Below the pieces are notes generated by a model. It saw only the letters and a program-made list of their open reading frames with translations. It searched no databases and was not told where the DNA came from. Of a stretch of DNA of 64,000 bases, positions 31,307 through 39,614 are shown in pieces. Both the position numbers and the translations under genes were made by a program. The stretch's first letter is position 1, and every line of letters starts with the position of its first letter. This DNA is from Salpingoeca rosetta (Eukaryota > Protista > Choanoflagellata): positions 1,411,793 to 1,475,792 of the forward strand of contig JAWQFM010000012.1 in the NCBI GenBank assembly GCA_033442325.1. The letters are read 5' to 3'.

Positions 31307-34300
31307 ATGAGCGAGCCGAAGAAGCAAAGGCCGCACCCCGCTCCTCGCCAGCGGAATGTGGTCATCAGATGCCGGGAAGGAAAGAAGCTCGAGTTCCCCG
31401 AGCGCGTTTGCCGGTCAGACCTTGTTGTTGTTTGTCGTCTGCTGTGGTTTGTTGCGGGTGAGTGTTGTTGTTGCACCACCGGCTTGCACCTTTGCTCGCA
31501 CCGCCTGATGAAGAATGCAAATGTAAACAAACCAACCTCACCTCGTCTTCCCGCCTTTGTATGTGTCATGAGGGACCGCCAGCGACTCGATCAAGCTGAT
31601 GGAGCTCATCGCCCATGCTCCCTCGCCTCCCGAGTACGATTGCTCTGTGTGTGTGTGTGTGTGTGCGCGTGCGCGTGTTTGATGTGTGTGTGTGTGTGTG
31701 TGTTTGCTCTGTTTGTGTGTGTGTGTGTGTGTTTGATGTGTGTGTATGTATGTGTGTGTTTGATGTGTGTGTATGGTGCTTTCGTGTCTGTGTACCGAGT
31801 GCGTGCTTGTCATATCATGCACAGGTGTATGTACGTTGGTGTGCCTACACGAGCGCCGTGTCCGTTGTTTTCTCCACCACAATGGCGCAGATCAACGGAG
31901 GCTCACATCCCTAGAGCGTTGTTGTGTAATGCAGGCAGCACACCGCTGTGGAAGTGAGCGTGGATCTGCCGGCCATTGGCGTGGAAGCCATCATGTTGCT
32001 CTTGGCCCACCACGCTGGTGGAGGGCGTGAAGCCATGTCTGACCCACAGGCCGAACGCAACGCATGGAAGAGCTACTTGCATGGCCAAGACCTCTTTCGC
32101 ATCATTGACGCCGCCTTCTACCTCGAGGTTGGCGTGCATGTGTGTATCTGTGTTTGTGTTTATGTTTGCGTGCATCTGTGTTTGTGCGTTTGTGTGTGTA
32201 TTTGTGTGTATCTGTGAGTGTGTGTGTATGTGTGTGTGTGTATCTGTGTGTGTATGTGTGTGTGTGTGTTTATGTATCTGTATGTTTGTGTGTGTGTGTG
32301 TGGGGGGGGGCTCATCTCTATGCCTGTACGTTGCTGTGCTTTCATGTTGATTTTATCTTTGGGGCGTCTGTCAACCGTACTGTAAGCGTGTGTAAGCGTG
32401 TGTAACCCCTTCTCTCCTTGTTCCCTCCTCTCTTGGTCGTGTCCGTGAGCACACACGCATGACTCACGGTGTTGCTGCTGTCACCGAGTGCCATCAATCC
32501 TCCCTGCTGACACATCCAAACGCACGCAATCGACGCCCACACCCACATTTCACCATCACTCATATTCCGCACACGCAACTGCCCACAGGTGACGCACCGA
32601 GAACAGCTCCGGTGCTTCGTCAAGGAGATTCTCGCTGATGCCGGCAAAGACACAGGTGCGCATCCGGCGAGCCTCACCTGCCCCCCCCCTTCCCCTACTC
32701 CTTGGATGCATGCATGCATGCAATGCACGCTGCACGTCGCATAGGATTGCAGTGTGCTGTTGTGAACACGCGACTAACCACGACGACACACCCATCTCAC
32801 CATCGTCCCCCCCCCCCCGGCTTTCCTCTCAAATCCAAATGGGGGGAAACAGAGGCGCTGCGAAAAGCGCTCGGTGTTGTTGTGTCGAGCGGGCGAGACC
32901 CCGCCATCAAAGTGGACCTGGACACCATTAACCAGGCCGCCCTCAAGTACACCAAGGTGAGCCAAGCAGCAGGGAGATGGGTGGGTTGCGAGTGCGGGCT
33001 GTGAAGGAGCCAGATGCATGCGTCGTTGGTGGGATATGCTGAAAGCAATATGGGGCTGCTCACCTGTATTTGCCTACACCTCAACTGTTGCTTTGCTGTT
33101 CTTGTGTGTGTGTGTGTGTATGTGTGTGATTGTGCATGTGTGTGTGTGTGTGTGTGTGTGTGTGTGTGTGTGTGTGTGTGTGTGTGTGTGTGTGTGTGTG
33201 TGTGTGTGTGTGTGTGTGTGTCAGACGGCACCGCAGTGCGCAAAGTGCGGCTTCATCTTCTCGCTCTTCAGCCGCCGCCACCACTGCCGCCGCTGTATTG
33301 AAGTGAGCGCCTGTCTGTGTTGTTTTTCTCCACCACATGCCAAATGCTTGCCTTGTGATCGCCTCCGTCCTGTGTTGTTGTTGTTGTTTGCCTGTTGTGT
33401 GCGTGCTGCTTGATGCCACAAGCAAACTGACTCAGCACACGTGTGTTGACACATTGACACGACCATGTTGATGCTTGCTTTCTCCAGGCCGTCTGTCACG
33501 CTTGCTCAACCCGCAAGATCCCGTTCAGGCCAAGCTACCTTCAGGTGTGTGTGTGTGTGTGTGTTTCTTTGTTTGTGAGTGAGTGTGTGTGTGTGTGTTT
33601 CTTTGTGCTTGTATGCGTGTGCTTGTGCTTGTGTGCTTACATGTATGTGTATGTGTGTGTGTGTGTAATCATGCTTGTGCTGCACCCTCCTCACCCGTCC
33701 TCCCAACGCCCACGAATGGCCCTCCATTCACCCCATGCCCCTCCCAACCCGTGTCGTAACGGAGACAGAGTGTGAACGAGAAGCTCGACATTCAGTTTTC
33801 CACTGCCGCTTTCCACGACTACACAGGTGCACGCCTCCTTGTGATGAGCTTGATGGCTGTGCTTCGTTGCTCCCCTCACTCTGCACCATCCTTGTCCGCT
33901 CACACCCTGCACATGTGTTGTGCGCTGTGTCTCTTCACCTTGCAGTGGGGATGTTCAAGACTGAGACGCTTGGCCGCGTGTGCGACGCCTGTCATCAAGA
34001 ATACCGAGAGGGTGCGTGTTTGTGTGCAAGAAGAGAGATGTTGTTGAAGACATAGCTGTGTCACTTGACACACGCGCTCAGGCACTTTTCCCACGCGTAC
34101 ATGCATATATCCACGCACACACTCACGCACATACACTCACACACACACTCACACACACACACACACACACACACACACACACACACACACACACACACAC
34201 ACACACACACACACACACACACACACAAACTCTCTCGCTCTCACGATGGGTTTTCATCGTTCCACAGCGACTGGGCAACCTGACACGTGCAAGGAGGTCA

Positions 34301-37300: not shown

Positions 37301-39614
37301 TGTGTTGTGTTGTGTTGTGCACCATGGTTGCTGACGTGCGCTTCTTGTGCCTGCAACATGCGTGACACAGGGCTGAGGGAGTTTCGGGACAAGTTGGCGC
37401 GCCGCGGTAAAACGTCCGGCAGCTTTCACGGACGCAGCAACAGCTCTCCGCAGACACACAGCAAACAACAACAACAACAACAACAACAACAACAACAACA
37501 ACAACAACAACAACAAGCAGTTGACGCAGTGGCAAGTGTGGATGCTGCTGACAAGAACGTGTGTGGCGGCAGTCACCCGGGCACATACATGGTGTCGCTG
37601 TCGCCGCCAGGCATCGATGTGCCGTCCATCTCCACGCCGGCTGATGAGGGTCTGAGTACGAATGTTGACACCGCGCAGACTCAGCAACAGCCACAGCCAC
37701 AGCCACAGCCACCGCGGCAACTGGAGGCTGGAGAAGCGTGCAGCGCTGCAGATGACATGTGTCTCGAGAAGGCCCCTCAAGTGGATGACGACGATGATGT
37801 CGTGGATGATGTCGATGTGCTCAAGAAGTCTGCGATGGACAAGGAGGAGGGAAAAGGGTTTGTGGAGTTCAGGACGGGGCTCGGCGTGAAGCGTGACGAT
37901 GTGCGGCCGGATCAAATAGCGGTTCACGCCATCAAGTACGCGCAGCTGCTGTTGCAGTACAGCGAGGGCCTGTCGTCTGGCAGCGAGAGCGATGCGCTGG
38001 CGGCGAGGTTGATCACGTACGACGTGCTGCCGACGTCACCGACCGCTGGCCTGGTGCAGTGGGTGGAGCAGGCGACCGATGTGAAGAAGATCATGGCCGG
38101 CCATTTTTCTTTTGCGCAGTTCTTGCTGGATCGCAGCAGTCCAGAGGCGAGGCACAACTTTGTGTACAGCGTGGCGGTGTATGCCGTGCTGACGTACCTG
38201 CTTGGTGTCGGCGACCGTCACTCGGAGAACATGATGGTGACGCAGGACGGCCAGTTCTTCCACATTGACTTTGGATTCATCGCTGGGCGCGATCCAAAGC
38301 CCGTCTTCAACATCATGTTTGGCGTCAGCCAACAGATGGTCCACGCCATGGGTGTGTTTGGTGCTGTCGGTGCATTTTTTTTTTTGGTTGTGTGAGTGTG
38401 TACGATTGTATGTGTTGTGTGTGTGTATGTGCATGAGTGTGTGTTTGCTTGTGTCTGCGCGTGCGTTTGTTCGTTGTGTGTGTGTGTGTGTGTGTGTGTG
38501 TGTGTGTGTGTGTGTGTGTGTGTGTGTGTGTGTGTGTGTGTGTGTGTGTGTGTGTGTGTGTGTGTGTGTGTGTGTGTGTGTGTGTGTGTGTGTGTGCGTG
38601 TAGACCTGCCTCCGTGCCCGTGTTCGTGCCTGTCTTCAACACGTGCTCACGGATGTTTGTCGGTTGTGGCGAAACCAGGGGACCTGCAAGACCTCTTCTT
38701 TGAGTTTGCCCAAACCACGTATCTGCGCCTTCGTCGACATGGACACGTGTTCATCTCCATGCTGAGCACTCTCAACACCATGAAGTACGTGCATTTTATG
38801 TGTGTGCGTGTGTGTGTGCGTTTTGGACGTGTGTGTGCGTGTGTGTGCGTGTGTGTGCGTGTGTGTGCGTTTTGGACGTGGTGTGGCGGTGATGCCATTT
38901 GTACGTATTGATCCGTTCTTGGTCTTAGTCATCAGCTCACGTTTGGTTGTGTCACCGCGTGCACATCGTTGCTATGCCAGGCCCGATGTTCCTGGCAGCC
39001 GGATGTGTTCTGTGGAGGAGTTGCACACGCAGTTCTCGCAGCGGTACCAGCTGGAGAAGGACGACCAGGAGGCTGCTAAGCACTTTCGCGCCCTCATTGA
39101 GAAGGAGCTCAAGTCATACAACCAAGCGCTGCGTGAGTGCATCCGAGGCGGGAGGAGGACATTTTGTGTCTGTGTGTGTGTCTGTGTGTGTGTGTGTGTG
39201 TCTGTGTGTGCCTGTGTCTGTGTGTGTGTGTGTGTGTCTGTGTCTGTGTCTGTGTGTGTGTGTGTGTCTGTGTGTCTGTGTCTGTGTGTATCCATCTATC
39301 TGCTGTCTGCCTGTGTGTCTGTTCGGTGCTTGCATCTCCTCACCACCATCCCAATACACACACACACACACACACACACACACACACACACACACACACA
39401 CACACACACACACACACACATACACACATACACACACACACACACAGTGGAAGGGACGCGGACGATGGTTGGTCAGGTGGGACGTGTGGCCCAAAGCACG
39501 GTGGAAGTGATGCAGGGTTTCTTCACATGGTCCAGGCGAAGTGCTTCAGCCAAGGAAACCACGAAGCAGGGCAGAGACATGGGTGACGATGATGATGATG
39601 AAGGCGACAGCTGA
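31307..39614 (+). CDS. Atypical PI3K/PI4K-family kinase: Skp1/BTB-like N-terminus, FYVE finger, helical region, Vps34-like catalytic domain
   Basis: N-terminus NVVIRCREGKKLEF...DLFRIIDAAFYLE (Skp1/BTB-like). FYVE: CAKCGFIFSLFSRRHHCRRCIEAVCHACS...RVCDAC. Kinase: GVKRDDVRPDQ, TYDVLPTSPTAGLVQWV, LLGVGDRHSENMMVTQDGQFFHIDFGFIAGRDPKP and YLRLRRH. Many GT-AG introns. Confidence 0.85.
35968..36067. other. Assembly gap (100 N) in an intron
   Basis: N run between CA repeats. Confidence 0.99.

Follow-up and report, generated by a model that had tools for sequence, protein, structure and literature searches.

Structure of the PTSG_11835 gene

We analysed a stretch of 64,000 nucleotides of the genome of the choanoflagellate Salpingoeca rosetta (contig JAWQFM010000012.1), referred to below as the window, and in it a gene at 31307-39614 on the forward strand. 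An earlier reading of the letters alone, called here the original prediction, had seen a spliced gene in this place, and its coordinates are exactly those of the coding sequence (CDS) of PTSG_11835. The product (XP_004996566.1, here P0047) has 1016 amino acids; it is already annotated, and its database record calls it a hypothetical protein. When the kinase exon was searched against 1.84 billion cluster representatives, the 1016-residue P0047 was found at 99% identity, and on scaffold GL832959.1 (GCA_000188695.1) the PTSG_11835 gene occupies 8308 bases, the length of the stretch in the window. As set out below, we are confident that PTSG_11835 is a single gene and that it belongs to a family of phosphatidylinositol 3-kinases (PI3Ks) bearing a FYVE zinc finger, the FYVE-PI3K family.

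The exons of PTSG_11835 were searched singly, and the full-length work used the database record P0047. This protein is reproduced by 24 exons with every codon agreeing, up to a TGA stop at 39612-39614. Each of the 23 introns has a single unique GT..AG solution that preserves the protein, and all junctions are in frame.

31307..39614, + strand: PTSG_11835 CDS, 24 exons, codon match to P0047
31307-31413, 31583-31633, 31935-32127, 32589-32655, 32853-32956, 33225-33302, + strand: exons 1-6
33488-33544, 33769-33826, 33946-34011, 34268-34356, 34628-34792, 34988-35039, + strand: exons 7-12
35193-35380, 35544-35621, 35787-35858, 36195-36269, 36446-36569, 36746-36831, + strand: exons 13-18
37020-37113, 37371-37413, 37573-38351, 38679-38784, 38981-39132, 39448-39614, + strand: exons 19-24
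35859..36194, + strand: intron 15, phase 0, GTAAGT..CAG, between the codons of Arg475 and Val476; holds the assembly gap

The window is eukaryotic nuclear DNA with a GC content of about 55%, and (CA)n/(TG)n runs abound in its introns; no part of it resembles human DNA. The introns of PTSG_11835 have a median length of 196 nt. Runs of at least five units make up 20% of its intron DNA (within 31414-39447) and 0% of its exon DNA. The assembly gap at 35968-36067 has (CA)n on either side and lies inside intron 15. None of 72 aligned homologues has a residue between positions 475 and 476 of P0047, so the flanks of the gap are continuous and in frame. In the same alignment the PI3Ka helices run unbroken across the junction. 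As far as homology can tell, no exon appears to have been lost in the gap.

Pfam scans of P0047, taken down to E<=10, gave FYVE, PI3Ka and PI3_PI4_kinase and no further family. For the N-terminal, FYVE and linker exons, whose raw open reading frame (ORF) pieces were scanned as well, there was no match, these exons being too short or split. The order along the protein is an N-terminal module, the FYVE finger, a linker, the PI3Ka helical domain and the kinase.

31307..32956, + strand: N-terminal module (exons 1-5, residues 1-174), matches no known family
33225..34011, + strand: FYVE zinc finger (exons 6-9, residues ~174-260), Pfam FYVE 3.4e-12 over residues 174-259
34273..35305, + strand: linker domain specific to the family (residues 263-400), in which a degenerate F-box-like helix region precedes the conserved H336 and C374/C379/C388
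35306..36801, + strand: PI3Ka-type helical domain (residues 401-560), Pfam PI3Ka 4e-8 (405-513), Foldseek match to the Vps34 helical and kinase unit
36802..39563, + strand: PI3K/PI4K catalytic domain (residues 561-1000), Pfam PF00454 1.6e-25
37373..37861, + strand: low-complexity insert in the kinase N-lobe (residues 603-712), predicted local distance difference test score (pLDDT) <50, about 80 residues extra
37883-37900 (Lys722 within it), 38210-38230 (GDRHxxN), 38261-38275 (HIDFG), 38285-38302 (GRDPKP), + strand: catalytic motifs
39561..39611, + strand: acidic C-terminal tail (residues 1000-1016) past the last kinase helix, pLDDT <50, no Vps34 equivalent

A Vps34-type kinase core without a C2 domain

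The catalytic domain scores 90.8 bits against PF00454, where the cut-off is 27.1. In alignments of 150 and of 73 sequences Lys722, D830-R831-H832, N835 and D848 stand on invariant or nearly invariant columns, and the activation loop GRDPKP aligns with that of Vps34, not of class I. The best solved-structure match by sequence is likewise Vps34 (6e-22, PDB). The AlphaFold model of P0047 has a mean pLDDT of 69.5 and a predicted template-modelling score of 0.71, with the helical and kinase unit modelled at high confidence; its top Foldseek matches are all Vps34 (template-modelling scores of 0.72-0.77, normalised to the target). A helical region and a Vps34-like catalytic domain with Lys, DRH and DFG intact had been read from the letters, and both are present. 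An identity as phosphatidylinositol 4-kinase (PI4K) was rejected, the catalytic residues being kept and the activation loop being of the Vps34 type.

Compared with Vps34/PIK3C3 (PDB 6i3u, 2x6h, 3ihy, 5dfz), PTSG_11835 thus has the same helical and kinase fold with the same Lys, DRH..N, DFG and GRDPKP-type loop. The two differ in everything around that unit. Vps34 has a C2 domain, which is the hub for its complexes with Vps15 and Beclin. In P0047 no PI3K_C2 match was obtained at E<=10, and the FYVE finger and linker stand in that position, with the extra N-terminal module before them; PF00792 was matched by ordinary Vps34 proteins in the same scans. Vps34 also lacks the insert of about 80 residues in the N-lobe and the extended acidic C-terminus.

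The long low-complexity insert had been noticed in the original prediction, and it is there: from the end of the helical domain to the catalytic Lys there are 145 residues, where the family median is 63, Vps34 has 66 and the choanoflagellate Hartaetosiga 168. Annotated intron 20 (37414-37572, + strand), which lies in this region, is 159 nt long, in frame, free of stops and poly-Q coding, and its retention would add 53 residues to the insert. It could be retained in some transcripts, in which case the longer insert read originally may correspond to an isoform.

A FYVE-PI3K family in protists and giant viruses

A first word search, restricted in protein length, returned matches of 38-41% identity and revealed the first FYVE-PI3K relative, while the full-length word search was dominated by Vps34 proteins. 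A local FYVE hidden Markov model (HMM) was then run on the 150 best cluster representatives, and 63 family members were scanned with Pfam. The FYVE finger preceded the kinase in 68 of the 150. The order FYVE, helical domain, kinase was found on one polypeptide in 61 of the 63 scanned relatives and in all ten ORFs from giant-virus metagenome-assembled genomes (GVMAGs). Since FYVE, linker and helical/kinase regions are all homologous, homology is collinear from the FYVE finger to the C-terminus.

Relatives are abundant in giant viruses. In a scan of IMG/VR, 143 contigs, many of them GVMAG contigs, encode proteins matching residues ~174-963 of P0047, and 77 of the loci kept have the gene as a single uninterrupted ORF from FYVE to kinase, typically of 645-760 amino acids. 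The viral contexts are dense and intronless, with genes for TFIIB, thymidylate synthase, PCNA, RNase III and collagen-repeat proteins. A Foldseek search of BFVD returned the PI3Ks of Faunusvirus, Klosneuvirus KNV1, Yasminevirus, Catovirus, Pithovirus LCPAC and Moumouvirus (5e-31 to 4e-12). These giant-virus genes are relatives of the cellular FYVE-PI3K family. One of the 63 family members (alignment A6) has a Pfam Intein_splicing match at 1.7e-9, so an intein seems to be present in one copy of this kinase gene at least. A eukaryote genome assembly (GCA_013572995.1) includes a 59-kb contig (JACCDX010227383.1) that is dense, free of introns and of giant-virus type; the contig holds genes for TFIIB, thymidylate synthase, DHFR, SWIB, NMT, a YqaJ-type nuclease and a FYVE-PI3K, and represents either a co-assembled virus or an endogenous one.

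The named cellular members among the matches are Hartaetosiga balthica, Salpingoeca urceolata, the oomycete Aphanomyces invadans (XP_008862172.1), Euglena gracilis, Soliformovum irregulare and an MMETSP transcript. The same domain order is seen in the proteins derived from transcripts of Hartaetosiga, S. urceolata, Euglena and Soliformovum. No metazoan FYVE-PI3K member turned up in our searches, in which no rigorous test for animals was made; this suggests that the family was lost in animals.

The family has been little studied, and the combination as such is not new. The mimivirus protein L615 (Q5UR69, 701 amino acids) consists of FYVE and PI3_PI4_kinase domains, and the order FYVE-PI3Ka-kinase has been described for the Dictyostelid proteins Q54UU9 and D3BQ22, with further cases in stramenopiles and excavates (PMC3271019). 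L615 has also been treated as a Vps34 homologue (PMC4569851). The statement in the original prediction that Mimiviridae encode FYVE-bearing phosphatidylinositol kinases of the L615 type is borne out by these two papers. The architecture has been known for mimivirus and Dictyostelids since 2012, and PTSG_11835 adds a member. In the literature searched we found nothing relevant that described an oomycete or choanoflagellate FYVE-PI3K.

Two neighbour-joining (NJ) trees with a simple distance correction were built. Tree 1 contained 180 sequences, among them 20 Vps34 and three class I proteins, over 411 helical and kinase columns (100 bootstraps). Tree 2 was limited to the FYVE-PI3K family and used 604 columns from FYVE to the C-terminus (200 bootstraps). 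In tree 1 the family, a clade of 136 sequences including S. rosetta, stood apart from Vps34 and class I in 83 of 100 replicates. S. rosetta paired with Hartaetosiga in 95/100 (tree 1) and 177/200 (tree 2), and the three choanoflagellates S. rosetta, Hartaetosiga and S. urceolata came together in 36/100 and 108/200, respectively. All named cellular members, including Aphanomyces, Euglena and Soliformovum, fell into a cluster of 14 sequences without any viral sequence (29/100 and 80/200), which three IMG/VR sequences (L047, L057 and L064) adjoin in tree 1. The kinase is thus not an ordinary Vps34 or PI4K orthologue. The viral affinity that had been predicted for a kinase phylogeny holds in that cellular and viral proteins share one FYVE-PI3K clade, but S. 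rosetta does not lie inside the viral bulk and groups with the cellular members, with weak support at depth. On these alignments we regard the FYVE-PI3K family as the probable sister group of class III PI3K (Vps34), in which a FYVE finger and a conserved linker, helical and of zinc type, appear to take the place of the C2 domain of Vps34.

FYVE finger and linker

The FYVE finger of PTSG_11835 carries RRHHCR at residues 191-196 (33273-33290) and RVCxxC at residues 249-254 (33975-33992; RVC at 249-251), and C251 and C254 stand on columns kept in 70-71 of 73 sequences. The WxxD motif, present in 96 of 125 family members, is absent from the S. rosetta finger, and the spacer between RRHHCR and RVC measures 52 residues, compared to a family median of 45. 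All three traits of the motif pattern, RRHHCR and RVC present and WxxD absent, had been read correctly from the letters. The FYVE fingers of S. urceolata, Euglena and Soliformovum, which like S. rosetta are cellular members with an N-terminal module, also lack WxxD.

A BLAST search with the linker (residues 263-400) found 56 family members, down to 1.6e-9, among the 150 best representatives. Its most conserved columns are L326, N329, G335, H336, C374, C379 and C388; the linker motifs picked out in the original prediction coincide with these columns. H336 (34757-34768 region) and C374/C379/C388 (35225-35269) are conserved in 93-96% of 73 viral and cellular family members. This conservation suggests that the His and the three Cys form a probable zinc site, so far unrecognised, between the FYVE finger and the helical domain. 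The AlphaFold pLDDT of the linker is about 85-95.

In a number of relatives Pfam places an F-box-like (17 of 63) or F-box (8 of 63) match directly after the FYVE finger (best 3e-6 and 3e-5), and such matches were also found in four of the ten GVMAG ORFs. They always lie about ten residues beyond FYVE and cover positions ~10-36 of the 47 in the profile. P0047 itself gave neither an F-box nor an F-box-like match with Pfam. Its corresponding stretch lacks the Trp, Arg, Gln and Tyr conserved in the family, the Trp column being occupied by Ile295, and it is the most degenerate among the cellular FYVE-PI3K proteins compared. When the linker pieces of two viral-type ORFs were searched against PDB, no significant F-box was found, the nearest being the TIR1 F-box at E 1.7.

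The N-terminal module and its relatives

The original prediction had called the N-terminus Skp1/BTB-like, and this could not be demonstrated for S. rosetta. Residues 1-174 of P0047 gave no Pfam match even at E<=10, and exon 3 alone matched nothing in PDB. Skp1 likeness was not significant in a leave-one-out HMM compared against 2000 shuffles, nor in two hhalign runs with the module. The same was true of Smith-Waterman comparisons with shuffles, in which the whole module and its second half were aligned with the Skp1-like modules of S. urceolata, Euglena and the MMETSP-type sequence. The sole significant pairing was with the N-terminus of Hartaetosiga (z 5.9, 0/500 shuffles). AlphaFold models residues 1-174 as strand-strand-helix followed by six helices, at pLDDT <50.

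In relatives, the region before FYVE does resemble Skp1. The module of an MMETSP-type metatranscript (L087:321-893) gave 29 PDB matches, all Skp1 (best 0.003), and a model of this region matched only FYVE domains and Skp1 chains in PDB (Foldseek). In L047, 27 of 29 PDB matches of the module before FYVE were Skp1, and Pfam gave Skp1 at 9e-4. The modules of S. urceolata, Euglena, L047 and L057 could be linked to that of the MMETSP-type transcript P0201 (z 3-7). No Skp1 match was found in PDB for the N-terminal extensions of L014 and L057. A Skp1-like module occupies the equivalent position in some relatives (P0056/L087, L047). The L047 gene, at 5611-7884 of a 261-kb IMG/VR contig (IMGVR_UViG_3300036979_000540), is an ORF of giant-virus type with the Skp1-like piece before FYVE and PI3K, and its neighbours are an ORF of 1808 amino acids with collagen repeats, an RNase III gene and a GT25 glycosyltransferase gene.

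These matches raise the idea, which we consider rather doubtful, that the family is built round a Skp1/F-box pairing of the SCF type with both halves in one Vps34-like kinase chain. An F-box-like stretch follows FYVE in many viral and cellular members, and a Skp1-like module would precede FYVE in a subset (S. urceolata, Euglena, the MMETSP-type transcript and one or more giant-virus contigs; S. rosetta and Hartaetosiga would be possibly very diverged cases). Such a handshake could act as an internal latch or as a dimerisation device, and the commoner viral forms, with the F-box-like half only, could dock onto host Skp1. Cullin or substrate binding, as in SCF ligases, is not inferable from these matches. 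The observations concern relatives; in S. rosetta itself neither match reached significance, and a ubiquitin-adaptor module there is at most conjectural. The literature searched contained no description of a link between PI3P synthesis and Skp1/F-box modules, and the recurrent F-box-like stretch, the Skp1-like module of the subset and the His/Cys3 site appear undescribed there.

Proposed function

Taken together, we think it probable that PTSG_11835 is a real, single nuclear gene that was inherited vertically and belongs to the FYVE-PI3K family, and that its enzyme makes phosphatidylinositol 3-phosphate (PI3P) and is targeted by its own FYVE finger. The enzyme would phosphorylate phosphatidylinositol at the 3-position, as Vps34 does. 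It would find its membrane through the FYVE finger rather than through a complex of the Vps15/Beclin type, could act where PI3P already exists, and could then sustain or spread it. For this feed-forward mechanism, as distinct from membership of the family, we see roughly even chances.

Several points weigh against this picture. The exon model is a database annotation. Vps34 needs Vps15 for its activity. With no WxxD and a long insert, PI3P binding by the S. rosetta finger is uncertain, and about 80 disordered residues interrupt the N-lobe of the kinase. The deep NJ nodes are weak (29-54%), so that an old transfer from a virus to a choanoflagellate could still lie behind the gene, and some viral-type proteins (41-43% identity) outscore S. 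urceolata (37%) as matches to the kinase exon.

The strongest alternative, though an unlikely one, is that the protein belongs to the family but has diverged in catalysis or function, as a scaffold or regulator or as an enzyme for another substrate (a PI 4-kinase or a protein kinase). The lack of WxxD, the 52-residue spacer, the replaced Trp, Arg, Gln and Tyr of the linker, the long disordered insert and the acidic tail after the C-terminal helix all speak for it, as does a full-length identity of only about 22-29% to relatives outside the choanoflagellates. Against this, Lys722, DRH, N835 and DFG are kept, the activation loop is Vps34-like, and the confidently modelled helical and kinase unit matches Vps34. 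A milder form of divergence is compatible with PI3P synthesis: with a FYVE finger that lacks WxxD and an F-box-like stretch that lacks its Trp, both the lipid-binding and the F-box-like functions may be weakened or changed in S. rosetta.

Descent and genomic neighbourhood

The original prediction had offered two origins, a cellular donor family or a domesticated, intronised viral gene. Of these the cellular family fits better, and it may have been the donor to the viruses. No sign of an endogenous giant-virus insertion (an intronless gene, viral neighbours or non-host composition) was found at PTSG_11835. Its CDS has a GC content of 0.589 and a GC content at third codon positions (GC3) of 0.735, and the GC3 of neighbouring genes is 0.64-0.80. 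The flanking genes are cellular, encoding a PX/SH3 protein, an XRN-type protein, glycogen branching enzyme and ribosomal protein L29e. S. rosetta and Hartaetosiga have both the N-lobe insert and the N-terminus in common. The pairing with Hartaetosiga, the shared insert, the GC3 and the cellular neighbours favour residence of the gene in choanoflagellates since at least the ancestor of S. rosetta and Hartaetosiga.

We therefore regard it as improbable that PTSG_11835 is a recently domesticated giant-virus gene, or the remnant of an endogenous insertion, that has acquired introns since. It is true that the family is very common in giant-virus metagenome-assembled genomes, with named matches in BFVD besides the 143 IMG/VR contigs, that several viral-type proteins are the top matches to the kinase exon outside choanoflagellates, and that the deep nodes of the trees are weak. 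However, the 23 GT..AG introns are rich in host (CA)n repeats, GC3 and neighbours are those of the host, the gene is sister to that of Hartaetosiga at 88-95%, and the cluster that holds every named cellular member contains no viral sequence. The occurrence of members in opisthokonts, Amoebozoa, stramenopiles and Discoba suggests that the family is old and cellular, and that giant viruses took genes from it or exchanged genes with it. With deep nodes this weak, transfer between cells and viruses may have run either way.

It is very improbable that the annotation fuses two genes, with exons 1-5 or a FYVE gene separate from the kinase gene. The N-terminal module matches no family, and exon 5 read into its intron meets a stop within a few codons, so that a short separate product is formally conceivable. 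But the Hartaetosiga transcript carries a homologous N-terminus and the kinase on the same molecule, the 77 viral ORFs without interruption and the proteins derived from transcripts of other eukaryotes show FYVE, linker, helical domain and kinase in the same collinear order, and all junctions are in frame with canonical splice sites. FYVE and kinase thus most probably lie in one gene, as had been predicted. Least probable of all is that PTSG_11835 is simply the S. rosetta orthologue of Vps34, only with an unusual N-terminus: Vps34 gives the best solved-structure match and dominates the full-length word search, but the protein has FYVE and linker in place of PI3K_C2, stands apart from 20 Vps34 sequences at 83% bootstrap, and has a linker homologous only to FYVE-PI3K family members.

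Two other genes of the window were noted. On the same strand, about 17 kb upstream of PTSG_11835, is a second PI3K gene (11279-14503, +; Pfam PI3_PI4_kinase 1e-32); it has a class I-like catalytic core, its best local matches are PK3CA-like (~58-60% identity), and it is no FYVE-type paralogue. At 5141-7264 (- strand) there is an intronless ATG ORF of 707 amino acids (DUF7869 1.9e-23) for which no called gene with that product is on record and which could be a mobile-element remnant.

Comparison with known enzymes and significance

Class III PI3K works in complexes with Vps15 and Beclin and makes PI3P from phosphatidylinositol only. PTSG_11835 shares its catalytic unit and differs from it in the regions described above. 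With the giant-virus FYVE-PI3Ks (the L615 type, here compared by description only, and those of Klosneuvirus KNV1, Catovirus, Faunusvirus, Yasminevirus and Moumouvirus) it has the collinear order and the conserved His and Cys of the linker in common. The viral genes, however, are intronless single ORFs that usually start at FYVE, and their products have no N-lobe insert and mostly keep WxxD, whereas PTSG_11835 has 23 introns and an N-terminal module and shows the opposite in both other respects. The protist proteins named above have the same architecture; for the Dictyostelid Q54UU9 and D3BQ22 this likeness is taken from the published description only (PMC3271019).

PIKfyve/Fab1, whose product is PI(3,5)P2, likewise unites a FYVE domain with a phosphoinositide kinase and is a lipid kinase aimed at PI3P membranes. 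Its catalytic fold is nevertheless the unrelated PIPK fold (PMC3823935), while the catalytic domain of PTSG_11835 is of the PI3K type (PF00454).

The FYVE-PI3K gene is a widespread membrane-trafficking gene of giant viruses, and its cellular copies provide a reference for the role and the origin of the viral ones. The Skp1-like and F-box-like pieces, if real, would be an unexpected architectural link from phosphoinositide synthesis to adaptors of the SCF type. S. rosetta is the main laboratory model of the choanoflagellates, the living group most closely related to animals. Its genome keeps a relative of Vps34 that lacks C2 and bears a FYVE finger, and, assuming that a canonical Vps34 is present as well, PI3P in this organism may come from two differently targeted enzymes.

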